DNA from: Octopus sinensis
Taxonomy: Eukaryota
NCBI RefSeq assembly: GCF_006345805.1
Contig: NW_021835806.1
Coordinates: 1 to 38,312, forward strand
Length of the DNA stretch: 38,312 nucleotides
Reading direction: 5' to 3'
Position numbers and translations under genes: made by a program. Positions 331-30,927 of the stretch are shown here, piece by piece; the stretch's first letter is position 1; each line of letters begins with the position of its first letter. Below the pieces are notes generated by a model, which was given only the letters and a program-made list of their open reading frames with translations, was not told the origin of the DNA and ran no database searches.

Positions 331-425
331 TTATGAATGGGAAAGTGGCAATGGTTGTCTGTGCAACAGACGAAAGGCTTCCACTTGGATAAAGACAATG
401 TTTAATGGATGTAGTGATAGATTTA
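331..425 (-). CDS. Candidate terminal exon, xNLSLHPLNIVFIQVEAFRLLHRQPLPLSHS*
   Basis: caagactag|TA acceptor in phase 1. An upstream ttcaagcag acceptor also exists. The homologous AG is altered in the copies near 8125 and 20095. Confidence 0.3.
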
Positions 426-812
426 CTAGTCTTGACGAAAGACAAGTGTTCAAACTAGGAATGCATTTCCTTGTAAGTGAACCAGATAATGAGTGGCACC
501 TGCTTGAATAACAACAACAATAACCAGTCAGTAAACGTAGTAAAATGTAAAACAAACAAAATCTTTTACTCACGTGATAAAGTATAACATATTATATATC
601 CCCGTTCAAAAAGAGAATATTCAATCTATTGTTTCTTCTAAATTATCCATTTTACCAACCATGTTAACTTGAGTGGATAATTTATGAAATGTCAATAATA
701 TCGATCCCTTTAATTTAATTAGTTTACAGTTAAAACGTGCAATTGGAATTTAGGAATAGAACATATTCTTAATAATTCCTACGAACAAAATAGCTCAGGT
801 AAACCTATTTAC

Positions 813-838
813 CTGCTTGTTCTGAGATTTGGGAAACA
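813..838 (-). CDS. Candidate 26-nt micro-exon, copy 1, (V)FPKSQNKQ, phase 1-0
   Basis: atttatttcag| acceptor, CAG|gtaaat donor. Confidence 0.45.
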
Positions 839-1124
839 CTGAAATAAATATTTCAAGGTTTTTCAAATTTATAATAAAATATTTTAAATCTAGATATTAA
901 TAATATATATTTTATTATTGTGGGACTTTCTGATCATCAATGGGCAGCCTGTGTATGGACAGCTGTGTATGCTACATAGTAGGGAAATGTATGTAGTGAA
1001 CACAGAGGACGTGTAAAGGCTTGAACAAAATGGAACCAGCATGCTCCACTGGATGGTGACTGTCAGTGTGCAGGTATAAAATGCTGACACGTTTTAAGAT
1101 AAAAGTCGAGAGTTATCACATGTA

Positions 1125-1290
1125 TGTAGTACGCAAGACAGACGACTGTGCTAGTATGACCATGTGATGTGTATGAATAAGATCAGCTGTATAAAGAGCA
1201 CCGATCTGTAAATGTGGAGAGAACCTCAAGAAAACTGGAAGGGAGTGTTGAGAAATGAGCTTCAGATCTTGAACCTGAGAGTCAATCGGT
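1125..1290 (+). mobile_element. Decayed RTE-clade LINE 3' fragment (copies near 8833-8995 and 20795-20955)
   Basis: Degenerate version of QERRLxWYGHVMRMDxDSCVKK...RKTW, compared with the RTE copy at 37693-37893. Confidence 0.6.
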
Positions 1291-1493
1291 AGAAAAGCGG
1301 GTATCTTTAAGAGACATATGTTCCTCGACCAATGGGGGTGGATAGTATCTCAGAATAGGACGTGTCTTGGGTAGAGACCGCCCATCAAATACATTTTAGA
1401 AAGAACATCAGACGATAAATGATGAGGATGTATTCGATTGTATTGTTATATGCAGCTAGTATTTATCTTGAAAGAGAAACAGACAATGGTTTC

Positions 1494-1567
1494 TCAGCAG
1501 AAAACCAAAGTCATTACTTCGATAAAGACAATGCTTAGTGGATGGAACGATAAATTTAATGTTGTAT
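1494..1567 (-). CDS. Candidate terminal exon, (D)TTLNLSFHPLSIVFIEVMTLVFC*, copy 1
   Basis: ttgtcttttcttag|AT acceptor, phase-1 entry. Confidence 0.4.
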
Positions 1568-2499
1568 CTAAGAAAAGACAACAGCAAAAATAAAAGTTTA
1601 AAACATTGTTAAAAGATATGAAGAGATAATATTTTTTAACTGCAACATCCGACATAATTCGTGATATAATAACTCAAATCTTCCTAATTTAACTAAAATA
1701 TTGCACACAGTTCCTACAACACCATTTCCAAAACGCTTCCGTCCCATTAATTGTCGATAAACACAGAAATAGCTACACCAGTCGTCTCGTTAGCTGAAAA
1801 CACTGATATACACCAGTTGAGCTTACTACTATAGAGAGAAATCCGTGATTATCTGGCAATGTTTAACTTGACCATTACAAAATTCGTTAACCCTAGAAGA
1901 AGTTCAGATGTACAATTACAAACTGCACGGTGGAGAGATATCATATTGTACCCTGACTGCTACCACAATCCGCCGTACACAACAAAACGCTGCATTTTAG
2001 CAGTTCCTTGTGTGATGATTAACAAAATGAAAGAATGGAATATCTGACGGGTTAGATCTGTATTTTTCACTGAGGCTATGACCAGCTACCTCTGGTTATA
2101 GATCTATTAAAGGGCTGAGTGGAAATTAAACTACACATGGTAAGATTTCTCTCTCCGACACATAATAGACATACAAAATTGAGATAAGCCCGCCCCAGCA
2201 CGAATTTTATCAGAGAATGAAGTAAATAACAATCGAATAAACAAAACAGAAACGACTTTTTACTATTTTAGATAAATCAATTAATTACTGCACACCAATT
2301 TCTAATTACTGGACAACTTCAAACAATCTGACACCGTGACAGCAGGTATCCTGAAACATTGTACACTTGCACAAAACCTTATTAACTACATTTAACTGGT
2401 CATCTACATACTATTGCATAAACATATCCGAAATGATACATAATAACTGACAATTAAGCATATATAAGCATGACGCAAATATAGATCAAACTGGAAGCA

Positions 2500-3600
2500 T
2501 TGAATCTTACGTTTGCCAAGAAGTTTCGAATACTCTCTTTCTTTTAACCCATTCCCATGTTTTCGTTTTCATCTTAATGTCCTTACAATGATTGGACAAA
2601 CAGGCAGCGCACCAGTGTCGAAACTTTTATAAGTTTTTCCCTAAACGTATGCATAGTTTCTCCTGCTACTTTGAACTTCACTTTGTTCTGCTGATCTTCC
2701 ACAAATAACAGATTGTATTATTTATTTGCTTCAAGTCAAATTCTTCACAAAGTAATCAGTCCACCCAGGCTATCCAGAAATATTTGCATAACATTTTGGT
2801 CTCTACATAGTATTTTTATGTCATCCATGAATGTCTTGTCTGGTGCTTTCACTTGGGTCATTTCTTTTGAGCAGACTACTGATCTAAGTAACATCTCGAA
2901 ACTGAAGGATTAATATTGTGCACCCTGCTCCAATTCCGATGACAGTCCCTGTAAAATGGTTTGTAATGAGCTGCCTTTTGAAATTGTTATAACAGCTCAT
3001 CATCAGACCTTAAAATTGCCCCAGTATGTAAAAGAAGTTCATTGATTTCATCAATAAATTGTATGGTCCACAACCATATGCTTTAGAGCGATCGAGCCAT
3101 ACAACATTCCAATTACTTCAATTCTTCTTTTTGTGTTGATCCCAGTTTGACATTTCATGTCCTACAAACCAAGAAAGTCAGGGATTTCCAGTCCTCTGCA
3201 CACTTTCCATCACATATCAATTATTTTGTAGGTGTATAGGTGATCTCTTAGCATGTACATCCACGTAAAGCTTGTCATTAAGGATTGAAACTAATTTCAA
3301 TTGGCCAATTGATTGTGATTCAGATTCCTTTCAAAAGTGAACTCTTTCTGCCTTATATCAGTCATAAATCCCTTCAATTTTATACCACAAACCCTTACTA
3401 TTATATAATGCTTATATAATGCAGTTTTTGCTCTTGCCTCCTTCTTGCTGCAATCTCTCAGTTAAAAGTTTAATTCCTGACTTTCTTTGAGAATTTATTA
3501 GAAAGACATCAACGTTTCTTTTGCTTGTACCACAATAAGATGCACCTAGGACACTTTATCAAGTGCTTTTAGGCAAGTATACCCTCATATAAAACCTAGA
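2500..3600 (-). mobile_element. Decayed Hero/R2-like non-LTR RT fragment
   Basis: Minus-strand frames give VVWLDRSKAYGCGPYNLLMKSMNFFYI and KTFMDDIKIL...KVKFKVAGETMHTFREK (FMDD-type RT) with many stops. Confidence 0.7.
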
Positions 3601-3678
3601 ATGGTTAATTGAGATGTGTCTTCTATCCGTTCATGACGTGGGAGCCTGGAAATCAGACGATATAGGATGAAGAGATTG

Positions 3679-3794
3679 TCAATTATTGTATAGTATCTTG
3701 CAACCAGTTTCTGTTTCGAAGTAAGAAATATAGACAACAACTATCACAGAAGTAAGTTGGATAAGGGCAATGTGTAGCGTATGTAATAAAATAT
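3679..3794 (-). CDS. Candidate terminal exon, (D)ILLHTLHIALIQLTSVIVVVYISYFETETGCKILYNN*
   Basis: ctgttttatttcacag|AT strong acceptor, phase-1 entry, hydrophobic stretch, TGA stop. Confidence 0.45.
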
Positions 3795-4288
3795 CTGTGA
3801 AATAAAACAGACTGCTTATACTTGAAATACCTTTCAAAGTACTTTTTTAGAAATATCAGCCAAAATAACAACATTAATCTATCAGCAAACATAATATAAA
3901 ATGTAAAACAAAGAGAAATGTCATTAACACGAATGTTTATCGCTAAACAACTACAAATATTAGTTTTCTCTTCCAAAGTAAAATATTAAATCTATTGTCT
4001 TCGAAGTTATCCCTTTTACAAACCATGCTCACCACATCGGATATTTTGTGAAATTACAATAATATCGATATGTTTTATTGGGTAAACTGGCAATATGACC
4101 ATTCCGAAATATAATAATATCTGTTTCAACACACGACTTCACATAAAAAATCTTGCACAACAAATATTTAATAGAATTATTATGCATCAAACTTTTCAAA
4201 TGCAAAATTTGGATTGGAAGATGTTGTCAGTCATTCAGTAAAGTTAAAATTTACAGTAATCGATAAGGTAATGATATTTTATACTCAT

Positions 4289-4351
4289 CATCAAATGATT
4301 CTGTTTCAAGCATAGGAAAGTTTGGAGACAGTGTTGTTTGCGACTATGTGT
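4289..4351 (-). pseudogene. Dead 63-nt cassette exon, copy 1
   Basis: ccg in place of the cag acceptor, atgagt in place of the gtgagt donor, in-frame TAG; length is still a multiple of 3. Confidence 0.55.
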
Positions 4352-5195
4352 CGGAAAAATATATTTTCAATCAAGTTTTACATTTTACACTATAATATGA
4401 TTATATCTATCAATCAAAAATATTCCATTACCGTAAGATATCTTTATTTTTAATGGTCAACGGCTGACCACTATGCTTTTGGTCAGCACGCTTTACAGAT
4501 TCAATATAACAAAACTCTTTATTAAGAGCCACCAAAATATTAACTAATTTCGTTCTGAAGAAGAACTGACTTGGACAGTGACAACTCATCTAGTCCATAG
4601 GAGCCTGGAAATCTGACGATAAATGTCGGGGTTGTTGCCTGTGATTCACTTGCATCGTGCAACCTGTATCTTTCATGAAGTAAGAAGGCAGATACCGATT
4701 ATCACAGTAGCAAAGAAATGTTTTCTATTCGGGAAAAGACAATGTGTAGTGGATGTAATAATAAAATCTACCAGTGTAACAAAACAGAGAGTTTACACTT
4801 GGAACGCATTTCATTGCAATTCTTCTAGATTATGAGAAGCATCCGTTTAAATAGCAACAATAACAATAATAACCTTGAAGTAAACATGATAAAAAGTGTG
4901 ACAAAAACAGCTGTCATTAACTCTAAATTTATATTCCTAAACAAATTAGCTTAGTTCTCTCTTTCTCAAAACTATACAAAATATATTCCCGTTTCAATTT
5001 TCCATTTTACAAACCACTCTAACCTCGTTGGATATTTTGTGAACTTTCAGTAATATCGATATATTGAATAGAATTATTATACAACATTTCGAATCTAATT
5101 AGGATAGAATCTGTACTCAGTCGTTCTAAAATACAAAAGCTCGGGAGAAGGTGAAATGTATAGAAATCGGTAAATTAATATCATTTCATACTTAC

Positions 5196-5282
5196 AATCA
5201 TTCTCTGATTGGTCTACTCCAGAATACGATTTAAAACCGGAATCGGTACTGGCTCCCGATACCATACTTCCTGTTGAATGTT
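5196..5282 (-). CDS. Candidate 87-nt cassette exon A, (E)HSTGSMVSGASTDSGFKSYSGVDQSEND, phase 1-1
   Basis: tattcatttcag| acceptor, T|gtaagt donor, open frame. Confidence 0.7.
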
Positions 5283-5734
5283 CTGAAATGAATATTTTCA
5301 AGATTTGCGTTGTATAGGATGATGTGCTTATCTTTGTTAATAATCTATATTTCACAATTGTGACATATTTCTATTTTCAATTGTCAGCGACTGACCACTA
5401 TGCTTTTGGTCAGCACGTTTTACAGTTTCAATATAACAAAACTCTATATTAAGAGCAACCAAAATATTAACTAATTTCCTATCTATACTCTTTGTATTCA
5501 GATATCAAATATAATTCAACAATATTGTAATTATTTAATTTCATTGTCTCTTTATAACAGAATTTTGCTTTTAGTTTTCTCTTTCCTTCCGTATTTCTCT
5601 GATTCTCAGGGTGTTTAAGGCACATGTATAAAGAGAAGATAACTCAACTACTGAAAAACACTGCTATAAAGAGATAATTACGTGAAGTAATTGCAATATT
5701 GTTAAATTATGTTGGATGTCACAATACATTGCGT

Positions 5735-6170
5735 TGATATATGAAGGTTGGTCTCAAAACGAAGCCGGATTGGACCAATCGCATAAACCTCTTCAACTAC
5801 ACCTATTTACCTGCAATTTACAACAGGTGTGAAAGCTGGTACACGACGAAGTGGGAGGGTGTGAGTCTGATAATGGCCCAAAACACAATCGAAAAATCGA
5901 GGTTTGGGAGTGTTGCTAAATTTGCACATCAAGAGTGAGGCGATCAGAGAGAAATCCGGTGTGAGAGACATCATCACTAAAAACTTATGCCAAAATTTCA
6001 GATAGGACAGGTAGCCAGCTCCCTGAAAATATTTAGAGATGCACAGTTGTTGAGAGTTATATACACGAGCAGAGGAGGTCACTGAGAGCGAATCCAAAAG
6101 TGAGTATTTGACGAAATACGACATCCTACGTAGGTGAGAAGGTCAAGATGAAGACAGAAGTGGAGGGTGC
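5735..6170 (+). mobile_element. Decayed RTE-clade LINE C-terminal fragment (copies near 12590-13020, 15835-16260, 17705-18135)
   Basis: LFNYTYLPAIYNRCESWYTTK...AQNTIEKSRFG and IREKSGVRDIIT resemble the RTE post-RT region. Confidence 0.6.
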
Positions 6171-6896
6171 ACTGTGATCTCTGGTGTCGTCAATACACTC
6201 AGTCAGTCGATCATGGTCAAGGTGGTATTTCTGTCACATCTATGACATAGCGTTTTCACCTCTACCATAGTAAACCTCACGAACCAAACTTCTCGTTTTC
6301 TGCTCAACTCAAATGCCAAGCAAGTGGATAACCATATATCGATCTTCAAAAACTGGTTGCACCACTTATAGTTAGAAAAAAAGCACCAGCTCTCTCTGTG
6401 AAACATTGATTCTGGAAATTTTTGATTTTAACTGCCCACATCAACCTGCGTAGTTGTGACGCATCTATGACATGGCGTTTTCACATCTACAGTAGAACTC
6501 ACTAATCAAACAATCTTATAATTTTCTGCTCACTTCCAGTGTCAACAAAGTTAATCATCAAATATCTATCTTCAAATTCATTTCACTTTAGACTACAAAC
6601 ACCTACTCTCTCTGTGAAACATTGCTGCTGGTAATCTTTAATTTTAACTGCCCACATCTACGTTCACCAGAATGTCATCTCATGTAGAAAATATTTGAAG
6701 ACCCCTGAATGAAATAGATTTCATCCCAAGTGAGTAATGATTAATTCTACACAGGCGTAGAGGAAAGAAATATCAGATGTCCCCCAAAACTGTGAACACC
6801 TAATGTACTTCATACAAGGTCATGGTAAATTTACTATCAGTGAAATATGACAGAATCTTTATGGAAATCGATGAGGTAATATAATTTTAAACTCAC

Positions 6897-6947
6897 CATA
6901 TTGTTTTGAACTGAGTTGGGTCCTTTTGGCAAAATCTCTTCCATAAT
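6897..6947 (-). CDS. Candidate 51-nt cassette exon, (D)YGRDFAKRTQLSSKQY, phase 1-1
   Basis: tattcatttcag| acceptor, G|gtgagt donor, open frame; paralog of 18857-18907. Confidence 0.7.
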
Positions 6948-7444
6948 CTGAAATGAATATTTTCACGTATTACATTTTATTGTATGATTTGGTTATATTT
7001 CTTAATCTGTATTTTGGTATTCTTCGACATTTATATCTTAAATGGTCAACGGATGATCACTATATCTTTGGTGAGTAACTCATACTGTTTAACACAATAT
7101 TTAGAGCCTTCAAAATATGCGCAAATTTCCTATCTATCCCCTCTGTATTCAGATATCCAGCATAATTTAACAAGATTGAAATTATTTAATTACCTCTTTA
7201 GAACAGTATTCTTCCTCTATGCCTTTCCTTTCATATCTCTCTGTATTTGAGCGAGTTTAATGTACAGATATAAGAGAGGAAAACTAAACTAATGAGAAAC
7301 AGTGTTATAAAGAGATAATTACGTGAAGTAATTACAATATTGTTAAATTATGTCGGATGTCACATTACAGTGCGGTGATATATATATATCAGTAATCAAG
7401 CGATCAGAGAGAATTCTGAGCGACATCATCACCAAATGCAGATG

Positions 7445-7995
7445 GAAGAAGTGTTGTATTACTCTTGAATAGTGTCCTGATGTCATATGGGCCGCATATC
7501 TTTTGTATCTTTTCGGAGAGGCCTTTCACATAAGGTAGACAGACTGTGGACAGTTTATTGGTTTCATCCTCTCTTTTCTTCATAATTGGAGTGGATAGTA
7601 TGTTTTTGGGTAGTTGTTGCTTAATAGATTGTTACTTAGCGTGATCATTTCTTCGTTGTGGGTTTCACGATCGCTACTTATATTCTTTACTCGATGTTTT
7701 AGGCACTGAGCAATCCCTCTCTTTACACTGTAAGGATGGTGGGAAATGAAGTTGATGTATCGTCCGGTAAAGGTCGGCTTGCGGTATACGGATGTTCTGA
7801 ATCCATACTTGGTGCGTGTTATTAATACCTCCAGGTTCGAAATTTCCTCAAGACACCTGATGAAGGCTGGAGGGTATATCAGCCTAAACGTTGTGTTAAC
7901 AACAAACAAGATGAGTTCTCATCTTTTAAATATCGAACTAGGCTCTCTAAAATGCCTTGTATCCTTTCTTCCTTCAATACGTGTGTCATTTCTTT
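7445..7995 (-). mobile_element. Penelope-like element fragment: RT C-terminus plus an inverted LTR-like piece
   Basis: LEVLITRTKYGFRTSVYRKPTFTGRYINFISHHPYSVKRGIAQCLKHR and LPYVKGLSEKIQKIC are typical of the PLE RT thumb/linker. Confidence 0.85.
7853..7896 (+). ncRNA. Minimal type-I hammerhead-like motif with an altered core, copy 2
   Basis: ACAC-CTGATGA-AGGCTG-gagggtatat-CAGCC-TAAA-CGTT-GTGT; stem I is ACAC/GTGT. Confidence 0.6.
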
Positions 7996-8520
7996 GAATG
8001 CATTGGCTTGCTTTGCATCATACAGTCAGTATCTATATTTATGAATGGGAAAGTGGCGATGGTAGTCTGTGCAACAGACGAAAATCTTCCACTTGGATAA
8101 AGACAATGTTTAATGGATGTAATGATAGATTTACAAGTCTTGAAGAAAGACAAGTATTCAAACTCGGAATGCATTTCCTTGTACGTGAACAAGATAATGA
8201 GTGGCACCTGCTTGAATAACAACAACAATAACCAGTCAGTAAACGTAGTAAAATGTAAAGCAAGCAAAATATTTAACTCACCTGAAAAAGAATAACATAT
8301 TATATATCCCCGTTCAAAAAGAGAATATTCAATCTATTGTTTCTTCTAAATTATCCATTTTACCAACCATGTTAACTTGAGTGGATAATTTATGAAATGT
8401 CAGTAATATCGATCCCTTTAATATAATCAGTTTACAGCTAAAACATGCAATTGAAATTTATGAATAGAACACATTCTTAATAATTGTGACAAACAAAATA
8501 GCTCAGGTAAACCTATTTAC

Positions 8521-8546
8521 CTGCTTGCTCTGAGACTTGGGAAACT
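8521..8546 (-). CDS. Candidate 26-nt micro-exon, copy 2, (E)FPKSQSKQ, phase 1-0
   Basis: atttatttcag| acceptor, CAG|gtaaat donor; 3 differences from copies 1 and 3. Confidence 0.45.
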
Positions 8547-9201
8547 CTGAAATAAATATTTCAAGGTTTTTAAAATTTATTATAAAATATTTTAAATCTA
8601 GATATTAATAATATATATTTTATTATTGTGGGACTTTCTGATCACCAATGGGCAGCCTGTGTATGAACAGCTGTGTAAGCTACATAGTAGTGAAATGTAT
8701 GTAGTGAACACAGAAGACGTTTAAAGGCGTGAACAAAATGGAACCAGCACGCTCCACTGGATGGTGACTGTCAGCGTGCAGGTATAAAATGCTGACACGT
8801 TTTAAGATAAAAGTCGAGAGTTATCACATGTATGTAGTACGCAAGACAGACGACTGTGCTAGTATGGCCATGTGATATGTATGAATAAGATCAGCTGTAT
8901 AAAGAGCACCGATCTGTAAATGTGGAGAGAACCTCAAGAAAAATGGAAGGAAGTGTTGAGAAATGAGCTTCAGATCTTGAACCTGAGAGTCAATCGGTAG
9001 AAAAGCGGGTATCTTTAAGAGACATATGTCCCTCAACCAATGGGGGTGGATAGTATCTCAGAATAGGACGTGTCTTGTGTAGAGACCGCCCATCCAATGC
9101 ATTTTAGACAGAAAATCAGACGATAAATGATGAGGATGTATTCGATTGTATTGTTATATGCAGCTAGTATTTATCTTCAAAGAGAAAGAGACAATGGTTT
9201 C

Positions 9202-9275
9202 TCAGCAGAAAACCAAAGTCATTACTTCGATAAAGACAATGCTTAGTGGATGGAACGATAAATTTAATGTTGTAT
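9202..9275 (-). CDS. Candidate terminal exon, (D)TTLNLSFHPLSIVFIEVMTLVFC*, copy 2
   Basis: ttgtcttttcttag|AT acceptor, phase-1 entry into the family frame. Confidence 0.4.
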
Positions 9276-10249
9276 CTAAGAAAAGACAACAGCAAAAATA
9301 AAAGTTTAAAACATTGTTAAAAGATATGAAGAGATAATATTTTTTAACAGCAACATCCGACATAATTCGTGATATAACAACTCAAATCTTCCTAATTTAA
9401 CTAAAATATTGCACACAGTTCCTACAACACCATTTCCAAAACGCTTCCGTCCCATTAATTGTCGATAAACACAGAAATAGCTACACCAGTCGTCCCGCAA
9501 GCTGAAAACACTGATATACACCAGTGGAGCTTAGTACTATAGAGAGAAATCCGTGATTATCTGGCAATGTTTAATTTGACCATTACAAAAGTCGTTAACA
9601 CTAGAAGGAGTTCAGATGTACAATTACAAACTGCACGGTGGAGAGATATCATATTCTACCCTGACTGCTACCACAATCCGCCGTACACAACAAAACGAGA
9701 CATTTTAGCAGTTCCTTGTGTGATGATTAACAAAATGAAAGAATGGAATATCTGACGGGTTAGATCTGTATTTTTCACTGAGGCTATGACCAGCTACCTC
9801 TGGTTATAGATCTATTAAAGGGCTGAGTAGAAATTAAACTACTTGTGGTAAGAATTCTCTCTCCGACACAAAATAGACATACAAAATTGAGATAAGCCCG
9901 CCCCAGCACCAATTTTATCAGAGAATTATGTAAATAACTATCGAATAAACAAAACAGAAACGACTTTTTACTATTTTAGATAAATCAATTTCTGCACACC
10001 AATTTCTAATTGCTGGACTAACTTCAAACAATCTGACACCGCGACATCAAGTATCCTGAAACATTGTACACTTGCACAAAACCTTATTAACTACATTTTA
10101 CTGGTCATCTACATACTATTGCATAAACATATCCGAAATGATACATAATAACTGACAATCAAGCATATATAAGCATGACGCAAATATAGATCAAACTGGA
10201 AGCATTGAATCTTACGTTTGCCAGCAAGTTTCGAATATTCTCTTTCTTT

Positions 10250-11370
10250 TAACCCATTCCCATGTTTTCGTTTTCATCTTAATGCCCTTACAATTATTGG
10301 ACAAAGAGGCAGCGCAACACTGTCTGAAACTTTTATAAGTTTTTCCCTGAATGTATGCATGTATGCGGTGCCTCAGCATGGCCACAGCTCATGAGCTGAA
10401 ACTAGAATCAATCAATCAATCAATCATAGTTTCTCCAGCTACTTTGAACTTCACTTTGTTCTGCTGATCTTCCACAAATAACAGATTGTATTATTTATTT
10501 GCTTCAAGTCAAATTCTTGACAAAGTAATCAGTCCACCCAGGCTATCCAGAAATATTTGCATAACATTTTGGTCTCTACATAGTATTTTTATGTCATCCA
10601 TGAATGTCTTGTCTTGTTCTTTCACTTGGGTCATTTCTTCTGAGCAGACTACTGATCTAGGTAACATCTCGAAACTGAAGGATTAATATTGTGCACCCTG
10701 CTCCAATTCCGATGACAGTCCCTGTAAAATGGTTTGTAATGAGCTGCCTTTTGAAATTGTTATACCAGCTCATCATCAGACCTTCACACTGCCCCAGTAT
10801 GTCAAAGAAGTTCATTGATTTCATCAATAAATTGTATGGTACCCAACCATATGCTTTAGAGCGATCAAGGCATACAACATTCCAATTACTTCAATTCTTC
10901 TTTGTGTGTTGATCCCAGTTTGACATCTCATGTCCTTCAAACCAAGAAAGTCAGCGGATTCCAGTCATCTGCACACTTTCCATCACATATCAATTATTTT
11001 GTAGTTGTATAGATGATCTCTTAGCATGTACATCCACGTAAAGCATGTCATTAAGGATTGAAACTAATTTCAATTGGCCAAATAATTGTGATTCAGATTC
11101 CTTTCATAAGTGAACTCTTTCTGCCTTATATCAGTCATAAATCCCTTCAATTTTATACTACAAACCCTTACTATTATATAATGCTTATATAATGCAGTTT
11201 TTGCTCTTGCCTCCTTCTTGCTGCAATCTCTCAGTTAAAAGTTTAATTCCTGACTTTCTTAGAGGTTTTATTAGAAAGACATCAACGTTTCTTTTGCTTG
11301 TACCACAATAAAATGCACCTAGGACACTTTATCAAATGGTTTGTTTTAGGAAATTATACCCTCATATAAA
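10250..11370 (-). mobile_element. Decayed Hero/R2-like RT fragment, recent duplicate
   Basis: Colinear with 2500-3600. Confidence 0.7.
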
Positions 11371-11455
11371 ACCTAGAATGGATAACTGAGATTCGTCTGC
11401 TATCCGATCAAGAGGTGGGAGCATGGAAATCAGACGTTAAAGGATGAAGAGATAG

Positions 11456-11571
11456 TCAATTATTGTATAGTATCTTGCAACCAGTATCTGTTTTGAAGTA
11501 AGAAATATAGACAACAACTATCACAGAAGTAAGTTGGATAAGGGCAATGTTTCGCGTATGTAATGAAATAT
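11456..11571 (-). CDS. Candidate terminal exon, (D)ISLHTRNIALIQLTSVIVVVYISYFKTDTGCKILYNN*
   Basis: atttatttcacag|AT acceptor, phase-1 entry, 18-residue hydrophobic stretch, TGA stop. Confidence 0.45.
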
Positions 11572-12066
11572 CTGTGAAATAAATCAGACTGCTTATACTT
11601 GAAATACATTTCAAAGTACTTTTTTAGAAATATCAGCCAAAATAACAATATTAATCTATCAGCAAACATAATATAAAATGTAAAACAAAGAGAAATGTCA
11701 TTAACACGAATGTTTATCGCTAAACAACTACAAATATTAGTTTTCTCTTCCAAAGTGAAATATAAAATCTATTGTCTTCCAAGTTATCCATTTTACAAAC
11801 CATGCTCACCACATCGGATATTTTGTGAAATTACAATAATATCGATATGTTTTATTGGCTAAACTGGCAAAATGACCATTCCGAAATATAATAATATCTG
11901 TTTCAACACACGACTTCACATAAAAAAATCTTGCACAACAAATATTTAATAGAATTATTATGCATCAAACTTTTCAAATGCAAAATGTGGATTGGAAGAT
12001 GTTGTCAGTCATTCAGTAAAGTTAAAATTTACAGTAATCGATAAGGTAATGATATTTTATACTCAT

Positions 12067-12129
12067 GATCAAATGATTCTGTTTCAAGCATAGGAAAGTT
12101 TGGAGACAGTATTGTTTGCGACTATGTGT
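12067..12129 (-). pseudogene. Dead 63-nt cassette exon, copy 2
   Basis: Acceptor reads ttttccg, donor reads atgagt, in-frame TAG; same module position as intact cassettes. Confidence 0.55.
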
Positions 12130-13559
12130 CGGAAAAATATATTTTCAAGTTTTACATTTTACACTATAATGTGATTATATCTATTAATCAAAAATATTCC
12201 ATTACCGTAAGATATCTTTATGTTCAATTGTCAACGGCTGACCACTATGCTTTTGGTCAGCACGCTTTACAGATTCATTACAACAAAACTCTATATTAAG
12301 ATCCACCAAAATATTAACTAATTTCCTATCTTTACTCTCTGTATTCAGACATCAAATATAATTTAACAATATTGTAATTATTTAATTTCATTGTCTCTTT
12401 ATAACAATATTTTGCTTTTAGTTTTCTCTTCCTTCCGTATTTCTCTGATTTTCAGGGAGTTTAAGGCACAGGTATAAAGAGAGGATAACTCAACTACTGA
12501 AAAACAGTGCTATAAAGAGATAATTACGTGAAGTATTTGCAATATTTTTCAATTATGTTGGATGTCACAGTACATTGCATAGATATGTGAAAGTTGGTCT
12601 CAAAACGAAGCTGGATTCGACCAATCGCATAAATCTCTTCAACGACACCTATTTACCTGCAATTTACAACAGGTGTGAAAGCTGGTACACAATGAAGAGG
12701 GAGGAAGTGAGTCTGATAATGGCCCAAAGCACATTCGAAAAATCGAGGTTATGGAATGTTGCTAAATTTGCACATCAGGAGTGAGGCGATCATAGAGAAA
12801 TCAGGTGTGAGAGACATCATCACTAAAAACTTATGCCAAAATTTCAGATGGGACAGGTAGCCAGCTCACTGAAATTATTTAGGGATGCACAGTTGTTGAG
12901 AGTTATATACGCGAGCAGAGGAGGTCACTGAGAGCGAATCCAAAAGTGAGTGTTTGATGAAATACGACATGCTACGTAGGTGAGAAGGTCAAGATGAAGA
13001 CAGAAGTGGAGGATGCACTGTGTTCTCTGGTGTCGTCAATACACTCAGTCAGTCGACCATGGTCAAGGTGGTATTTCTGTCACATCTATGACATAGCGTT
13101 TTCACATCTACAGTAGAACTCACTAATCAAACATTCTTATAATTTTCTGCTCACTTCCAATGTCAACAAGGTTAATCATCAAATATCGATCTTCAAATAC
13201 ATTTCACACCACTTCATTTTAGACAACTAGCACCTACTCTCTGCGTGAAACATTGCTGCTGGTAATCTTTAAGTTTAACCGCTCTCACCAACGTTCGCCA
13301 GAATGTCTTCTGATACAGAAGATGTGTGAAACCTCCTTACGGAAACAGTTTTCTTTCCAGATGAGTAATAATTTATTCTACTAAGTTGTTGGCGAAATTG
13401 GTATCAGGTACCCCAAAACAACACCGCCGTTTATCTACACATCATTGCATAAAATGCATCCGAAATGGTACATAATAGAACTGATTCTCAAAAATACATA
13501 CGCAAGCCATGCTAGAAACATCATATACTATATTTACTTTGAGGTTTTCACAATCTATT

Positions 13560-14620: not shown

Positions 14621-14850
14621 GTCAGGAATGGCATAGCACTACATGAAAGCAGTGATGTTTAAGTGAGATATGTTCCTCTACGAATGAAGAAGGGAAGTAG
14701 TTCTGAAGAAGAACTGACTTGGACAGCGACAACTCATCTAGTCCATAGGAGCCTGGAAATCTGACGAGAAATGTCGGGGTTGTTGCCTGTGATTCACTTG
14801 CATCGTGCAACCTGTATCTTTCATGAAGTAAGAAAGGCAGATACCGATTA

Positions 14851-14918
14851 TCACAGTAGCAAAGAAATGTTTTCTATTCGGGAAAAGACAATGTGTAGTG
14901 GATGTAATAATGAAATTA
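14851..14918 (-). CDS. Candidate stop-containing terminal exon, xISLLHPLHIVFSRIENISLLL*
   Basis: gttacactggtag|TA acceptor entering, in phase 1, the frame shared by the terminal-exon family. The copy near 4767 is 2 nt shorter and frameshifted. Confidence 0.35.
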
Positions 14919-15351
14919 CTACCAGTGTAACATAACAGAGAGTTTACACTTGGAACGCATTTCATTGTAATTCTTCTAGATTATGAGAAGCATCCGTTTA
15001 AATAACAACAACAAACAATAATAACCTGAAGTAAACATGGTAAAAAATGTGACAAAAACAGCTGTCATTAACTCTAAATTTATATTCCTAAAAACAAATT
15101 AGCTTAGTTCTATCTTTCTCAAAACTATACAAAATATATTCCCGTTTCAATTTTCCATGTTAAAACCACTCTAACTTCGTTGGATATTTTGTGAAATTTC
15201 AATAATATCGATATATTGAATAGAATTATTATACAACAAACCTTTCGAATCTAATTAGGGATAGAATCTGTACTCAGTCGTTCTAACATACAAAGCTCGA
15301 GATAAATTGAAATGTATAGAAATCGGTAACTTAATATTATTTCATACTTAC

Positions 15352-15438
15352 ATCCTTCCTCTGATTCATCTACTCCAGAAGATGATTGTAAACCGGAATC
15401 GGTACTGGCTCCGGGTACTATACTTGCTGTTGAATGTT
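15352..15438 (-). CDS. Candidate 87-nt cassette exon B, (E)HSTASIVPGASTDSGLQSSSGVDESEEG, phase 1-1
   Basis: tattcatttcag| acceptor, T|gtaagt donor, open frame. Confidence 0.7.
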
Positions 15439-17161
15439 CTGAAATGAATATTTTCAAGATTTGCGTTGTATAGCATGATGTGCTTATCTTTGTTAATAAT
15501 CTATATTTCACTATTGTGACTTATTTCTATTGTCAATGGCTATATAAAGGGCCACCAAAATATTAACTAATTTCCTCTCTTTACTCTCTGTATTCAGATA
15601 TCAAATATAATTTAACAATATTGTAATTATTTAATTTCATTGTCTCTTTATAACAATATTTTGCTTTTAGTTTTCTCTTTCCTTCCGTATTTCTCTGATT
15701 TTCAGGGAGTTTAAGGCACAGGTATAAAAAGAGGATAACTCAACTACTGAAAAACATTGCTATAAATAGATAATTACGTGAAGTAATTGCAATATTGTTA
15801 ATTATGTTGGATGTCACAATACATTGCATTGATATATGAAAGTTGGTCTCAAAAAAGTCGGATTGAACCAATCACATAAACCTCTTCAACAACACCTATT
15901 TACCGCAATTTACAACAGGTGTGAAAGCTGGTACACAACGAAGATGGAGGATGTGAGTCTGATAATGGCCCAAAGCACAATCGAAAAATCGAGGTTTGGG
16001 AGTGTTGCTAAATTTGCACATCAAGAGTGAGGCGATCAGAGGGAAATCAGGTGTGAGAGACTCATCACAAAACTTATGACAAAATTTCAGATGGGACAGG
16101 TAACCAGCTCACTGAAAATATTTAGAGATGCACAGTTGTTGAGAGTTATATACACGAGCAGAGGAGGTCACTGAGAGCGAATCCAAAAGTGAGTGTTTGA
16201 CGAAATACGACATGCGACATAGGTGAGAAGGTCAAGATGAAGACAGAAGTGGAGGGTGCACTGTAAACTCTGGTGACTTCAATACACTCAGTCAGTCGAT
16301 CATGGTCAAGGTGGTATTTTGTCACATTTATGACATAACGTTTTCACCTCTACCGTAGTAAACCTCACAAACCAAACTTCTCGTTTTCTGCTCAACTCCA
16401 ATGTCAAGCAAGTGGATACCATATATCTATCTACAAAAACTGGTCACACCACTTACCGTTAGACAGAAAGTACCTGCTCTCTGTGAAATATTGCTTCTGG
16501 TAATCTTTGATTTTAACTGCCCACATCAACGTGCGTATTTGTGACGCATCTATGACATGGCGTTTTCACATCTACAGTAGAACTCACTAATCAAACAATC
16601 TTATAATTTTCTGCTCACTTCCAGTGTCAACAAGGTTAATCATCAAATATCTATCTTCAAATTCCTTTCACTTTAGATACAAACACCTACTCGCCGTGTG
16701 AAACATTGCTGCTGGTAATCTTTAATTTTAACTGCCCACATCTACGTTCACCAGAATGTCATCTCATGTAGAAAATATTTGAAGACACCTTAATGACATA
16801 GATTTCATCCTAAGTGAGTAATGATTAATTCTACACAGGTGTAGAGGAAAGAAATATCAGATGTCACATCAGATGTCATTAACTCTAAATTTATATTCCT
16901 AAACAAATTAGCTTAGTTCTCTTTCTTAAAACTATACTAAATATATTCCCGTTTCAATTTTTCATTTTACAAACCACGCTATCCTCGTTGTATATTTTGT
17001 GAAATTTCTGTAATATCGATATATTGAATAGAATTATTATACAACAAAACTTTCGAATCTAATTAAGGAATAGAATCTGTACTCAGTCGTTCTAACATAC
17101 AAAAGCTCGGGAGAAGGTGAAATGTATAGAAATCGGTAACTTGAAATTATTTCATACTTAC

Positions 17162-17248
17162 TATCTTCCTCTGATTCATCTTCTCCAGAAGGTAAACTTA
17201 AACGGTGACTGATACTGGCTCTTTGAAATATACTTCGTGTCAGAATAT
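17162..17248 (-). CDS. Candidate 87-nt cassette exon C, (D)ILTRSIFQRASISHRLSLPSGEDESEED, phase 1-1
   Basis: gtcatttcag| acceptor, A|gtaagt donor, open frame. Confidence 0.7.
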
Positions 17249-18856
17249 CTGAAATGACTATTTTCAAGAGTTGCGTTGTATAGCATGATGTGCTTATCTT
17301 TGTTAATAATCTATATTTCACTATTGTGACATATTCCTATTGTCAATGGTCAACGGCTGACCACTATGCTTTTGGTCAGCACGTTTTACAGTTTCAATAT
17401 AACAAAACTCTATATTAAGAGCCACCAAAATATTAACTAATTTCCTATCTATACTCTCTGTATTCAGACATCAAATATAATTCAACAATATTGTAATTAT
17501 TTAATTTCATTGTCTCTTTATAAGAATATTTTGCTTTTAGTTTTCTCTTTCCTTCCGTATTTCTCTGATTTTCAGGGAGTTTAAGGCACAGGTATAAAGA
17601 GAGGATAACTCAACTACTGAAAAACATTGCTATAAAGAGATAATTACGTGAAGTAATTGCAATATTGTTAAATTATGTTGGATGTCACAATACATTGCGT
17701 TGATATATGAAAGTTGGTCTCAAAACGAAGTCGGATTGGACCAACCACATAAACCTCTTCAACAACACCTATTTACCGGCAATTTACAACAGGTTTGAAA
17801 GCTGTACACAACGAAGATGGAGGATGTGAGTCTGATAATGGCCCAAAGCACATTCGAAAAATCGAGGTTTGGGAGTGTTGCTAAATTTGCACATCAAGAG
17901 TGAGGCGATCAGAGGGAAATCAGGTGTGAGAGACATCATCACTAAAAACTTATGACAAAATTTCAGATGGGACAGGTAACCAGCTCACTGAAAATATTAA
18001 GAGATGCTCAGTTGTTGAGAGTTATATACGCGAGCAGAGGAGGTCACTGAGAGCGAATCCAAAAGTGAGTGTTTGACGAAATACGACATGCTACGTAGGT
18101 GAGAAGGTCAAGATGAAGACAGAAGTGGAGGGTGCACTGTGATCTCTGGTGTCGTCAATACACTCAGTCAGTCGATCATGGTCAAGGTGGTATTTCTGTC
18201 ACATCTATGACATAGCGTTTTCACCTCTACCGTAGTAAACGTCACGAACCAAACTTCTCGTTTTCTGCTCAACTCCAATGTCAAGCAAGTGGATAACCAT
18301 ATATCTATCTACAAAAACTGGTCACACCACTTACCGTTAGACAGAAAGTACCTGCTCTCTGTGAAATATTGCTTCTGGTAATCTTTGATTTTAACTGCCC
18401 ACATCAACCTGCGTATTTGTGACGCATCTATGACATGGCGTTTTCACATCTACAGTAGAACTCACTAATCAAACAATCTTATAATTTTCTGCTCACTTCC
18501 AGTGTCAACAAGGTTAATCATCAAATATCTGTCTTCAAATTCCTTTCACTTTAGATACAAACACCTACTCGCTGTGTGAACATTGCTGCTGGTAATCTTT
18601 AATTCTAACTGCCCACATCTACGTTCACCAGAATGTCATCTCATGTAGAAAAATTTTGAAGACCCCTGAATGACATAGATTTCATCCCAAGTGAGGAATA
18701 ATTAATTCTACACAGGTCTAGGAGAAAGAAATATCAGATGTCCCCCAAACTGTTACCACCTAATTTACTTCATATAAGCTCATGGTAAATTTACTATCAG
18801 TGAAATATGACAGAATCTTTATGGAAATCGATGAGGTAATATAATTAAAAACTCAC

Positions 18857-18907
18857 CATAATGACTTAAACTGTGTTCGGTCCTTTTGGGGAAATCTCTT
18901 CCATAAT
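18857..18907 (-). CDS. Candidate 51-nt cassette exon, (D)YGRDFPKRTEHSLSHY, phase 1-1
   Basis: tattcatttcag| acceptor, G|gtgagt donor, open frame. Confidence 0.7.
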
Positions 18908-19404
18908 CTGAAATGAATATTTTCACGTATTACATTTTATTGTATGATTTGGTTATATTTCTTAATCTATATTTTGATATTCTTCGACATTTATATCTTA
19001 AATGGTCAACGGATGACCACTATATCTTTGGTGAGCAACTCATACTGTTTAACACATTAATTAGAGCCTTCAAAATATGCGCAGATTTCCTATCTATCCT
19101 CTCTGTATTCAGATATCCAGCATGTTTTAACAAGATTGAAATTATTTAATTACCTCTTTATAACAGTATTCTTCCTCTATGCCTTTCCTTTCGTATCTCT
19201 CTGCATTTGAGTGAGTTTAAGGTACAGATATAAGAGAGGAAAACTAAACTAATGAGAAACAGTGTTATAAAGAGATAATTACGTGAAGTAATTGCAATAT
19301 TGTTTAATTATGTCGGATGTCACATTACAGTGCGGTGATATATATCCGTAATCAAGCGATCAGAGAGAATTCTGGTGTGAGCGACATCATCACCAAATGC
19401 GGAA

Positions 19405-19955
19405 GGAAGAAGTGTGGTTTTACTCTTGAATAGTGTCCCGATGTCATATGGGCCGCATATCTTTTGTATCTTTTCGGAGAGGCCTTTCACATAAGGTAGA
19501 CAGACTGTGGACAGTTTATTGGTTTCATCCTCTCTTTTCTTCATAATTGGAGTGGATAGTATGTTTTTGGGTAGTTGTTGCTTAATAGATTGTTACTTAG
19601 CGTGATCATTTCTTCGTTGTGGGTTTCACGATCGCTACTTATATTCTTTACTCGATGTTTTAGGCACTGAGCAATCCCTCTCTTTACACTGTAAGGATGG
19701 TGGGAAATGAAGTTGATGTATCGTCCGGTAAAGGTCGGCTTGCGGTATACGGATGTTCTGAATCCATACTTGGTGCGTGTTATTAATACCTCCAGGTTCG
19801 AAATTTCCTCAAGACACCTGATGAAGGCTGGAGGGTATATCAGCCTAAACGTTGTGTTAACAACAAACAAGATGAGTTCTCGTCTCTTAAATATTGAACT
19901 AGGCTATCTAAAATGTTCAGTATCCTGTCTTCCTTCAATACGTGTGTCATTTCTT
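19405..19955 (-). mobile_element. Penelope-like element fragment, copy 3
   Basis: ORFs 19320-19544 and 19541-19870 carry the same PLE motifs. Confidence 0.85.
19814..19857 (+). ncRNA. Minimal type-I hammerhead-like motif with an altered core, copy 3
   Basis: Same sequence as copy 2. Confidence 0.6.
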
Positions 19956-20479
19956 TGAATGCATTGGCTTGCATTGCATCATACAGTCAGTATCTATATT
20001 TATGAATGGGAAAGTGGCATGGTAGTCTGTGCAACAGACGAAAATCTTCCACTTGGACAAAGACAATCTTTAATGGATGTAGTGATAGATTTCCTCGTCG
20101 TGAAGAAAGAAAAGTGTTCAAACTTGGAATGCATTTCCTTGTAAGTGAACCAGATAATGAGAGGCACCTGCTTGATATACAACAACAAAACCAGTCAGTA
20201 AACGTAGTAAAATGTAAAACAAACAAAATCTTTTACTCACGTGATAAAGTATAACATATTATATATCCCCGTTCAAAAAGAGAATATTCAATCTATTGTG
20301 TCTTCTAAATTATCCATTTTACCAAACATGTTAACTTGAGTGGGTAAATTATGAAATGTCAGTAATATCGATCCCTTTAATTTAATTAGTTTACAGTTAA
20401 AACGTGCAATTGGAATTTAGGAATAGAACATATTCTTAATAATTCCTACGAACAAAATAGCTCAGGTAAACCTATTTAC

Positions 20480-20505
20480 CTGCTTGTTCTGAGATTTGGG
20501 AAACA
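20480..20505 (-). CDS. Candidate 26-nt micro-exon, copy 3, (V)FPKSQNKQ, phase 1-0
   Basis: atttatttcag| acceptor, CAG|gtaaat donor. Confidence 0.45.
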
Positions 20506-23050: not shown

Positions 23051-23099
23051 GCGTGATTCTTGCTGAAATCATTGTTGATTCCTAGTTTCATTCCGTGTT

Positions 23100-24789: not shown

Positions 24790-24950
24790 AGTACATTGAT
24801 TACATCGACCCCAGTGCACAACTGGTATTTTCCTTTTGACCCTGAAGGGGTGAAAAGGCGAAGTCAACCTCGGCAGAATTTGAAATTAGAACCTAAAGAC
24901 GGACGAAATGCAGTTAAGTGCATTAACGATTCTGCCAGGGGTCACCTTAT
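24790..24950. mobile_element. SINE-like repeat, orientation 1
   Basis: tcgaccccagtgcacaactggt...aacctcggcagaatttgaa; reverse complement of the neighbouring copy. Confidence 0.6.
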
Positions 24951-24984
24951 CTATTATTTAATAATATTAAAGCGGCGAACTAGC

Positions 24985-25160
24985 AGAATCGGTGGCGCGC
25001 CGAACAAAATGCCTAGTGGCGTTTCGTCCGTCTTCACGTTCTGAGTTTAAAATTCCACCGAGGTTGTCTTTGCCTTTCATCTTTTCAGGGTAAATAAAAT
25101 AAGTACCAGTTGTGTACTGGGGTCGATATACTCGCCTCATTTCCTCCCCAGAAAATGATC
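24985..25160. mobile_element. SINE-like repeat, opposite orientation
   Basis: ttccaccgaggttg...accagttgtgtactggggtcgat. Confidence 0.6.
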
Positions 25161-25589
25161 ACACAAGATCAATAAAAGGGCAGATATAAGCCGCCTATTT
25201 GGTGAAAAGGATCTTATTTTACATATAAAAATTTATATTTTAAATCATATTATTTTCATACTGAAATGCTTATGGTATTAAAGTAAAATTCCTAATTACA
25301 ATTTGAGATGTAATTGATTTACAATTCATTGATTACATATTAACAAACAATTATCTAATTAGATCATTATTATACGTTTTGTATTTTTGATTGTAAAAAT
25401 AACTAGATATAAACGATGACAATCTCTTCTGGATGAGAGCAGATCCTCAGGGGCCAGCTTATAAAACCTGGCTCTCTGTATCAGGTGCTCAAACCAATCA
25501 GATAATGTTTGGTTAGGGCACCCGACAAGCATTGCTACAGATCGAGGAACGCCATGACTGAAGTCATGCGTTTGATTGGTGCATGAAAT

Positions 25590-26690
25590 TAATAAATCTT
25601 GGTTTTCATCTGAGAGTTCAATGATACGACCAATGTACCAATCATTTTCATTCGTGTATCCAACATATTTTCAGGACTTTAACTTTGAAATATTTTGCTC
25701 AGATGCTGGCCTCTCCTCACCTAAAAGAGTGAAATTGTCATCAGCTGATATCTTCGTTAGAAGATCAGATCTTGAAGAAGGTACGAAGCGGTGATGGGAT
25801 CGTGTGCCAACTAATTTCACTGAGCTGCTGATTCGTGAAAGCAAATCGAAGCTGTTTTCATTTCGGATGACATCGGATGCCGACATGTCAAAGAACATTA
25901 TCTCTGGAATGCTTGCACATGCTCAGCCATACATCTTGCAACCTGTGAGAAAATGTCTTTCCTGGTTGCTTGTAGACTTGCTTTTTCAGCAACACATTTC
26001 ACCATCCTACTGATCCCCTCATATGTACTTTTTCCACATGACATGGCAAAGAAAAACGACTCCGCTTCAAGTCCTTGATCATTCTGATGATGACAGAGAT
26101 TTGTTTGGTGTCTCTAGTTCTTGTATTGGTCGGCTGCTCCGTCACTGAAGTACAGGAGATGGTTTATGAATGGAAGTTCTGTCTTTATATGCGATATCAC
26201 CCTCGTAATAAAAGCATGCACTATGGGGTTGTCATGTTTCAAACAATCAGATATGACACAGATTGAAGTGCATTGTGGGTTTGAACCAGTCTTATAACAA
26301 ATCACGAATGGATGAATATATTGGCCTGGGAGTTGTTCCGATGAAAACCTTGCTCCGAATCCTTCACTACAAAACTATAATTTTCTGCCAAGTCTGACAA
26401 TACTCTCGCATGATTTGATGTCAGATCATCTTTCTGATGAAAAAGGAGACTAGTTTGAGCCTTTGCTATGAAATAGGGTTGATGCAGAGTGTCAAATACA
26501 TTTTTAGCGGTTTGAAGGAAATCATTCACTGGGGAAGTTAGGCACATCAGGAAGGCCCAGTCCACATAAATCCTCGTTACTAAATCCTCTGAGTCAAAAT
26601 CACGTGATAAAAATATGTCCAACACTTCAGTCCACTCAGCTGGCGAAAATATGTAATTTTACAGCGGACTAAATCAAAATCAAAATCGAT
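25590..26690 (-). mobile_element. Decayed DNA-transposon-like transposase fragment, superfamily not assigned
   Basis: Broken frames containing DLAENYSFVVKDSEQGFH, CVISDCLKHD, YFSDGAADQYKN and GTRSHHRFVP. Confidence 0.5.
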
Positions 26691-26704
26691 CAACATCAAT
26701 GGAA

Positions 26705-27030
26705 ATTGTAGCTGTGATACCAGTGCCGGTGGTACGTAAAAGAACCATCCGAACGTGGCCGTTACCAGTGCCGCCCGACTGGCCTCTGTGCCGATGGCAC
26801 GTAAAAAGCACCTTCCAATCGTGACCGTTTGCCAGCCTCGTCTGGCACCTGTGCCGGTGGCACGTAAAAAGCACCCACTACATTCACGGAGTGGTTGGCG
26901 TTAGGAAGGGCATCCAGCCGTAGAAACTTTGCCAGATCAGACTGGGCCTGGTGCAGCCTTCTGGCTTGAAGACCCCAGTTGAACCGTCCAACCCATGCTA
27001 GCATGGAAAGCGGACACTAAATGATGATGA
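26705..27030 (+). mobile_element. SINE/RTE-tail-like repeat with three internal gtgccggtggcacgtaaaa units and a (TGA)n tail
   Basis: aggaagggcatccagccgtagaaac core; related copies near 33850-34040 and 38140-38312. Confidence 0.6.
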
Positions 27031-27144
27031 CTAGCGTCCTATTCATGGAAAAATATATAAGCCGGGGGAACCGGGAAACCAACCCTATGCTTTTTATGGT
27101 GTAATGTGGTCTAACATAATTAGGTACAGTTACTTTCTACTCAC

Positions 27145-27195
27145 CAGGTGGTTCTGCCAACATCTGGACTTCCGGTTTTGACGACTTTGGACCCT
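27145..27195 (-). CDS. 51-nt phase-1/phase-1 exon after the RING, (E)GPKSSKPEVQMLAEPP
   Basis: ttgtttatttcag| acceptor, G|gtgagt donor, no stop codon, continues the phase-1 end of the RING exon. Confidence 0.8.
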
Positions 27196-29222: not shown

Positions 29223-29270
<48 letters not shown>

Positions 29271-30847: not shown

Positions 30848-30864
30848 TATATATATATATATAT

Positions 30865-30927
<63 letters not shown>

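Follow-up and report, generated by a model that had tools for sequence, protein, structure and literature searches.

The variable exons of CD44 and exons 4-6 of PTPRC are consecutive cassette exons that can be combined without a change of frame and that alter an unstructured stalk. In the PEVK region of titin, some codons are under positive selection (PMC6469411). Here, we set beside these systems an array of short exons from Octopus sinensis, carried by the unplaced scaffold VCDQ01005844.1 (assembly GCA_006345805.1), the whole of which, 38,312 nucleotides (nt), was analysed and is referred to below as the window. The one gene called on the window runs on the minus strand from 35316 to 813, and its product, P0001, is a protein of 287 residues with the RefSeq name 'E3 ubiquitin-protein ligase MIB2-like, partial'. 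We propose, with a probability of about 0.6, that what follows the RING exon of this gene is an array of splice-competent units, enlarged by duplication, that supplies skippable, frame-neutral cassettes. The anatomy and the duplication history of the array are close to certain; we infer that the distal cassettes (18907 to 5196) are variably spliced in vivo and that the resulting tails have functional weight. The locus is a real and moderately novel case of a known splicing design. Isoforms of this kind are already annotated in related genes, and the view, in an earlier reading of the window (the original prediction), that no such architecture is known for ligases of the Mind bomb family had to be given up, because isoforms that vary in their cassettes are already among the public predicted ones. 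No account of the array turned up in literature searches that covered octopus MIB2-like proteins, death domain and cassette exons.

Six exons had been listed downstream of the RING exon, on the same strand, with AG/GT sites and open from phase 1 to phase 1, and all six are present on the minus strand: three of 51 nt (27195-27145, 18907-18857 and 6947-6897) and three of 87 nt (17248-17162, 15438-15352 and 5282-5196). The RING exon (28677-28535) does end in phase 1, with one spare base. Each of the six cassettes comes after ...TTTCAG and before GT[AG]AGT, is open in the frame set by the phase-1 entry and is frame-neutral, being in phase 1 on either side and a multiple of 3 in length. The canonical cassettes of a second scaffold (L002, VCDQ01005752.1), of a canonical paralogue (L003, CM016887.1) and of a further paralogous gene (L005, LOC115232124) are likewise of 51 nt and phase 1/1; exons of 26 nt, the FPK exons, are the exception to the phase rule. 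An open frame between AG and GT is not in itself significant, because chance segments of this description (45-99 nt long, in multiples of 3, with phase 1 open) number 509 on the sense strand of the same 27 kb, and 403 on the antisense strand. The flanking intron motifs that the cassettes were said to share are another matter: an 18-nt acceptor motif is matched 9 times, on the minus strand in every case, where 0.26 matches are expected, and nhmmer profiles of the 50-nt acceptor and donor flanks recover exactly the units and nothing else. Between cassette types, the 30-nt flanks are 72% and 68% identical versus 36-40% for the exon bodies, a value close to random for the base composition. The unit consists of an acceptor module (~30-50 nt, ending in TTTCAG), a short exon and a donor module (GT[AG]AGT plus ~40 nt), and the EGPK, VNRTF, VRPK and first Death-domain exons of L003 are bordered by these modules too, as are the cassettes of L005.

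Growth of the array by tandem duplication, as originally predicted, is supported by the shared flank modules, by the homology of the units and by a self-comparison of the window. The self-comparison resolves two higher-order tandem repeats on the minus strand (839..20505), 20505-8547 (11,959 bp) and 8546-839 (7,708 bp), each ordered FPK, YGR, (ILT), HST, dead unit, with copies 94-97% identical; the smaller units of 1.6-1.9 kb inside them are 76-96% identical. A transposon origin of the repeat unit was considered and rejected, the long open reading frames within the units having no Pfam match. Rfam families and tRNAs, sought as hosted non-coding RNAs that could explain the conservation of the introns, are absent from the window.

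Read in the sense direction, the units follow one another as EGPK, FPK, YGR, ILT, HST, dead unit, FPK, YGR, HST, dead unit, FPK, all on the minus strand. The EGPK cassette (27145..27195; 51 nt, phase 1/1), (E)GPKSSKPEVQMLAEPP, is the conserved cassette of the family, identical or nearly so in L002, L003 and L005. FPK copy 1 (20462..20505) has the family acceptor module and an exon of asymmetric length (20505-20480, 26 nt), read-through of which leads over VNRFT to a stop at 20462, 94 nt upstream of an ATTAAA; an exon of this type also terminates RefSeq isoform P0003 of L002 (...FPKSQNKQVNRFT). YGR-a (18857..18907; 51 nt, phase 1/1), (D)YGRDFPKRTEHSLSHY, is intact and is skipped by the RefSeq model, and ILT (17162..17248; 87 nt, phase 1/1) has a second AG 9 nt upstream. 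HST-a (15352..15438; 87 nt, phase 1/1), HSTASIVPGASTDSGLQSSSGVDESEEG, is found in P0001 and in P0003 and P0049 of L002. The dead copies and stop-containing exons that the original prediction mentioned are real: the unit at 12178-12020 has CG in place of the acceptor AG, has lost its donor GT (ATGAGT) and carries a stop codon in frame, and the second dead unit (~4404-4242), with the same defects, is its copy in the next higher-order repeat. FPK copy 2 (8503..8546; exon 8546-8521, stop at 8503) begins with the codon TAG if the preceding cassette ends in T. It is followed by YGR-b (6897..6947; 51 nt, phase 1/1), (Y)YGRDFAKRTQLSSKQY, and by HST-b (5196..5282; 87 nt, phase 1/1), HSTGSMVSGASTDSGFKSYSGVDQSEND. 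The partial RefSeq model closes with FPK copy 3 (795..838; exon 838-813, stop at 795); going by homology, a further YGR unit would be expected past the end of the scaffold.

Several routes to an early end are built into these units. All three 26-nt exons (20505-20480, 8546-8521 and 838-813) shift the frame, and read-through of their donor gives VNRFT, with a stop five codons past the donor and ATTAAA ~95 nt downstream of it; the FPK exons are probably alternative terminal exons. The intron after each cassette, moreover, holds a stop in the frame of that cassette, 2-12 codons away for EGPK and YGR and 33-41 codons away for the 87-nt cassettes. Read-through of the YGR-b donor gives GEFKIILPHRFP and then a stop, and the same kind of ending is found at another YGR copy, in RefSeq isoform X1 of L002. 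We also note that the conserved donor module (for example, 27144-27098, 18856-18808 and 6896-6848) encodes a read-through peptide, GEYKITVPN-stop or GEFKIILPHRFP-stop, which is annotated as the C-terminus of P0008, P0010, P0018, P0031 and P0049. The donor module may be conserved both as a splice signal and as an alternative coding end.

Predicted isoforms in at least five paralogous genes differ by one, two or three whole 17-residue cassettes, in many combinations. In L003, the exon order is RING, EGPK, VNRTF, VNRTF, VRPKV, Death exon 1, Death exon 2, with all four cassettes and the first Death exon placed between the same flank modules, and the six predicted isoforms (481, 478, 464, 447 and 430 residues) differ in steps of 17-residue cassettes (E-V-V-R, E-V-R, E-R and R). 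The predicted isoforms of L005 are E-V-V, E-V, V-V, V and E, and skipping of a single cassette is predicted in three further genes. As a rule, NCBI Gnomon adds 'X' isoforms only with support from transcript or RNA-seq alignments. At the window locus, the RefSeq model P0001 joins the RING exon to 27195, 17248, 15438, 6947, 5282 and 838 and skips 18907; its ILT exon begins at 17257, through the real AG 9 nt upstream, which adds 'VIS'. The gene on L002 has two predicted isoforms with the same cassettes and different 3' ends, FPKSQNKQVNRFT versus YGRDF...GEFKIILPHRFP. From these models, it appears quite probable that at least some of the distal cassettes are spliced; free combinatorial use of the cassettes at the window locus is a tentative proposal, to which we give somewhat less than an even chance.

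A modular, spliced C-terminal tail, as the original prediction had it, stands in one respect and gives way in another. P0001 does splice five cassettes and a 26-nt exon after the RING exon, leaving out 18907. In the family, the segment from the RING to the Death domain holds from zero to at least four 17-residue cassettes (four in P0033 of O. bimaculoides) and, since the cassettes lie between RING and Death across the family, the array is normally a linker. A Death-domain exon was sought in the window and in L002, both of which end inside the array, and none was found. The first Death exon of L003 (42237-42308) has 72 nt, is of phase 1/1, lies between the same modules as the linker cassettes and reads DILTLEVKHL..., starting like the ILT cassette of the window (DILTRSIF...); its skipping would also be frame-neutral. 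That the 87-nt cassettes may descend from this Death exon is a lead only: DILT opens both, and by eye about 10 of the initial 14 nt agree, after which the similarity is lost.

The proximal cassettes behave as expected of real coding exons. Copies of EGPK differ at 0-2 of 51 nt versus 1.4-13% in the 400-nt flanks and copies of VNRTF at 0-1 of 51 nt versus 1-10%, and both appear, from these counts, to be under purifying selection. The distal cassettes change 2.5-3 times faster than their 400-nt flanks. For YGR-a and YGR-b, the divergence is 15.7% in the exon and 4.9% in the flanks (Fisher p 0.005); for HST-a and HST-b, 16.1% and 6.4% (p 0.004); and for ILT and HST, 32-38% and 12% (p 8e-6 to 9e-9). 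One pair of FPK copies has 2 differences in 44 exon nt versus 0 in 800 flank nt. In the claimed frame, the nonsynonymous divergence (pN) of the distal cassettes is 2.6-3.6 times the intron divergence, and the ratio to synonymous divergence (pN/pS) is ~1-2, with no sign of constraint at the protein level.

This last result belongs with several others that weigh against the distal units as working, skippable cassettes. The rapid change of the exon bodies is one; the two dead units among the cassette copies are another, together with the L002 counterpart of the 18907 cassette, the donor of which is broken (AT for GT). The 'IIS' extension of the HST exon in P0001 requires a non-canonical AT acceptor (15449-15448), which makes the model imperfect: either it implies such an acceptor or its evidence was cross-mapped from another copy. 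Furthermore, no homologue of the distal tail came up when 1.84 billion representative proteins were searched exhaustively with HMMER; the sole match, P0080 (E = 1.1e-5), was rejected as a compositional match of Ala/Gly/acidic low complexity. A word-indexed protein search with the tail was also empty and, as it missed the positive controls P0001 and P0003 too, is uninformative. Finally, the scaffold is cut at both ends and its 3' end falls inside the cassette array, so that the 'C-terminal tail' is putative. As an observation on the RefSeq model itself, 'VIS' and 'IIS' are the translation of the last 9 intron bases (TCATTTCAG) before ILT and HST (17259-17249 and 15449-15439).

Together with the abundance of phase-1-open AG..GT segments by chance, and with the YGR exon being open in two frames, which makes open frames weak evidence, most of these points would fit a scenario in which only 27195-27145 works. 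The distal YGR, ILT, HST and FPK units would then be pseudo-exons that have inherited splice signals and are rarely or never included, and the path of the RefSeq model through them would be, for the most part, an artefact of ab initio prediction or of cross-mapping. Decay of pseudo-exons, however, predicts equal rates in exons and introns, and the exons diverge 2.5-3 times faster than the flanks (Fisher p 5e-3 to 9e-9); plain decay does not, therefore, explain the distal pattern. Moreover, AG, GT and an open frame are kept in six of the eight cassette copies, and two RefSeq genes, those of the window and of L002, use distal cassettes, the isoforms of the latter differing in their 3' end. That the distal units are mere pseudo-exons is the main rival to our reading, and one that we consider rather unlikely. 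Diversifying selection would fit the pattern, as would a patchy gene conversion that homogenises introns yet stalls at diverged exons, on counts that are small. Possibly, the distal cassettes form a diversity-generating tail, in which the splice modules serve as fixed 'sockets' and the exon bodies are under diversifying selection, a proposal that we regard as a long shot. If it were true, an E3 ligase from a family of Death-domain signalling proteins could be given different repertoires of tails by different individuals or cells, and the family may act in innate immunity or cell death. The system would then be a cytoplasmic, splicing-based counterpart of the hypervariable immune genes of invertebrates.

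The array of duplicated, skippable cassettes that we favour does not depend on a single scaffold. L002, of 63,978 bp, has the same order of units as the window and is 98.9% identical to window 16865-1 over 16.9 kb. A 1.87-kb unit with the ILT cassette (window ~18742-16865) is extra in the window and absent from L002, and a 3.5-kb piece of L002 with the VNRTF and VRPKF cassettes (38316-41851) is missing from the window (23453-23141); with one segment extra and one missing, the copy number of the units varies between two near-identical scaffolds. It could be argued that the repeats are an artefact of assembly, haplotypes or collapsed and expanded repeats having been stitched together in an unplaced scaffold that is short and ends within a repeat, in a family many members of which are on small scaffolds of 30-67 kb. 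Yet the copies differ by 3-6% and by indels, more than duplicated reads from a single locus could account for, and the same organisation, save for the 1.87-kb unit and the 3.5-kb deletion, is found on two independent scaffolds, which makes an assembly artefact very improbable. The two scaffolds are far more diverged on the upstream side of the RING exon, so that different ankyrin-repeat (ANK) regions are joined to nearly the same tail. The identity of 94-99% starts ~130 bp upstream of the RING exon (window 28809-27671 versus L002 31597-32739), and 7 of the 48 residues encoded by the two RING exons differ. These alignments suggest that, through recombination or gene conversion, one RING-plus-tail half came to be combined with different ANK halves.

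The conserved flanking intron modules also invite comparison with Dscam, the system that the original prediction had invoked. On this account, competing RNA pairings would allow exactly one alternative exon per transcript and, indeed, the HST acceptor flank can pair with the donor flank in both copies. The predicted helices, however, are no better than those of shuffled sequences (z -0.96 to +0.66), and none is found in the ILT, YGR and EGPK units, in foldings that covered the exon and its flanks and thus bear on local pairings, long-range ones being outside their scope. The cassettes are, moreover, of unequal length (51, 87 and 26 nt) and unrelated in sequence. Above all, the gene models contradict it already: in the paralogues, annotated isoforms string together anything from zero to four cassettes, and P0001 has five plus FPK, so that the cassettes are not mutually exclusive, and splicing of the Dscam type is hardly credible here. 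In the same foldings, a structure of the exon-looping or selector kind received no support, a flank-to-flank helix being found only in the two HST copies and not above shuffles.

The gene to which the array belongs was taken to encode a ligase of the Mind bomb family, an assignment that we do not uphold. Pfam scans of the full-length paralogues P0057, P0049, P0033 and P0074, on which the question was tested since the window itself is without the N-terminal exons, match only Ank families, a single zf-C3HC4_3 RING and Death, and neither MIB/HERC2 nor ZZ domains. The RefSeq name 'MIB2-like' stems from a partial similarity, namely, ankyrin repeats followed by a zf-C3HC4_3 RING. Close homologues (E < ~1e-35) come solely from O. 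sinensis, O. vulgaris and O. bimaculoides, and the Ank, RING and EGPK segments of the window are 90-100% identical to paralogues. Judged by its sequence, what the window carries is probably the 3' portion of a gene from an ANK-RING-linker-Death family, seen in this analysis in Octopus alone. In an AlphaFold2 model of P0049, made from a family alignment of 20 sequences, the predicted local distance difference test score (pLDDT) is >90 for the ANK region and ~70 for the RING; all 155 post-RING residues (335-489) score 25-47, with almost no secondary structure, where the alignment is shallow. The model is consistent with a disordered post-RING tail.

Four proximal coding exons lie on the window: two ankyrin exons, the RING exon and the first post-RING exon, 27195-27145. 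The first coding exon on the scaffold (35185..35397, minus strand; DSVNLEIVNKKYRTPLLEAV...MTMLDQ) encodes ankyrin repeats and has an AG acceptor and a GTAAGT donor; it is supported by a Pfam Ank_4 match in P0001 and by tblastn matches of 90-100% with P0001, P0002 and P0004. The second, an ankyrin/linker exon (31508..31686, minus strand; FCVELKLGNEERCSG...MLFPPT), ends in phase 2 and is followed by the RING exon (28535..28677, minus strand; 143 nt, zf-C3HC4_3). The N-terminal ankyrin exons known from paralogues were not found on the scaffold and are located beyond 38312. Past the RING-exon donor, the open frame continues as GKNTV up to a stop, AATAAA occurs 235 and 273 nt further downstream, and a GKNTV ending is annotated in a paralogue (P0007/P0079). 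That transcripts stop at GKNTV, as could be inferred from P0079, was rejected, the scaffold of P0079 ending ~850 nt past the RING exon.

Several repeats lie around these exons. Between the second ANK exon and the RING exon, there is a degraded DNA transposon of the Tc1/Sleeping-Beauty-like kind (29226-30970, in minus-strand sense), with terminal inverted repeats that are 82% identical (29226-29550 versus 30970-30648) and with remnants that match Pfam HTH_SB and DDE_3 in a frame interrupted by many stops. Upstream of the scaffold's first ANK exon, a reverse-transcriptase fragment on the plus strand (~36400-37800; RVT_1, E = 4e-4, a weak match below the Pfam cut-off) is probably a decayed long interspersed nuclear element, antisense to the gene. 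A long (GT)n microsatellite comes directly after the donor of the first ANK exon (35184-35060, minus strand), and the RefSeq models P0042 and P0043, of two paralogues, translate it by donor read-through (…MLDQVSFHIVCDYVCVCVCV…), which is apparently an artefact of annotation. A short interspersed repeat with '...CCTTCCTAA(C/T)GCCA(A/C)CCA...' recurs in introns at ~38200, 33900 and 26910 (minus strand) and, judged by eye, likely represents a family of short interspersed nuclear elements.

How such an array could have arisen and worked may be summarised as follows. The array grew at first by the copying in tandem of a unit of ~1.6-4 kb and later, at the window locus, by a further duplication of blocks of 7.7-12 kb, each with several units and a 26-nt exon with its own stop. 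Because the cassettes are symmetric, the spliceosome could include or skip each of them with the frame kept, and each included cassette would add 17 or 29 residues of low complexity, predicted to be disordered; alternative ends would come from donor read-through or from an FPK exon. In the canonical genes, the number of cassettes would tune the spacer between RING and Death. At the window locus, block duplication has added fast-changing cassette types and repeated terminal exons, which would give tails that are acidic, rich in Ser and Thr and devoid of a Death domain. Use of the distal cassettes would mean that a signalling enzyme can gain an adjustable linker or tail merely by the copying of a splice-competent unit, and that a gene family already multiplied in octopuses yields many isoforms. 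The ANK, RING and Death domains point to ubiquitin-dependent control of Death-domain complexes. Conserved proximal and fast distal cassettes, side by side, offer a natural experiment on the birth, testing and loss of exons. The locus also calls for caution in annotation: being rich in repeats, it breaks assemblies, and the public gene models are partial.

Compared with the described systems, the octopus proteins share with MIB1 and MIB2 the order of ankyrin repeats and zf-C3HC4_3 RING, but lack MIB/HERC2 and ZZ domains, have a single RING rather than two or three and, in the full-length paralogues, end in a C-terminal Death domain. Dscam1 and the octopus array are alike in having tandemly duplicated alternative exons with conserved intronic elements; Dscam, however, picks one exon for the same half-domain, whereas the octopus cassettes are additive, of varied length and disordered. 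With CD44, the octopus genes have in common consecutive, frame-neutral cassette exons. The octopus units differ in being recent tandem copies with conserved intron modules, which the variant exons of CD44 are not known to be. The design is, on the gene models, probably that of an independent, frame-neutral array of cassette exons of the titin PEVK or CD44 kind, with titin PEVK as the closest parallel (PMC6469411). In both, many short repetitive exons encode a disordered segment and are, by the gene models in the case of octopus, differentially skipped to set its length, and both grew by tandem duplication, including duplications and triplications of blocks. The proximal octopus cassettes are, like PEVK, rich in P, E, V and K (EGPKSSKPEVQMLAEPP and VRPKVEDKASQTEAQP), whereas the distal ones are without any common peptide motif. 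Titin PEVK is by far the larger array, the octopus genes having 2-4 cassettes in canonical paralogues and ~6 intact ones in the window, and the octopus array, known here from gene models, is placed in an E3 ligase/Death-domain protein rather than in a muscle spring.

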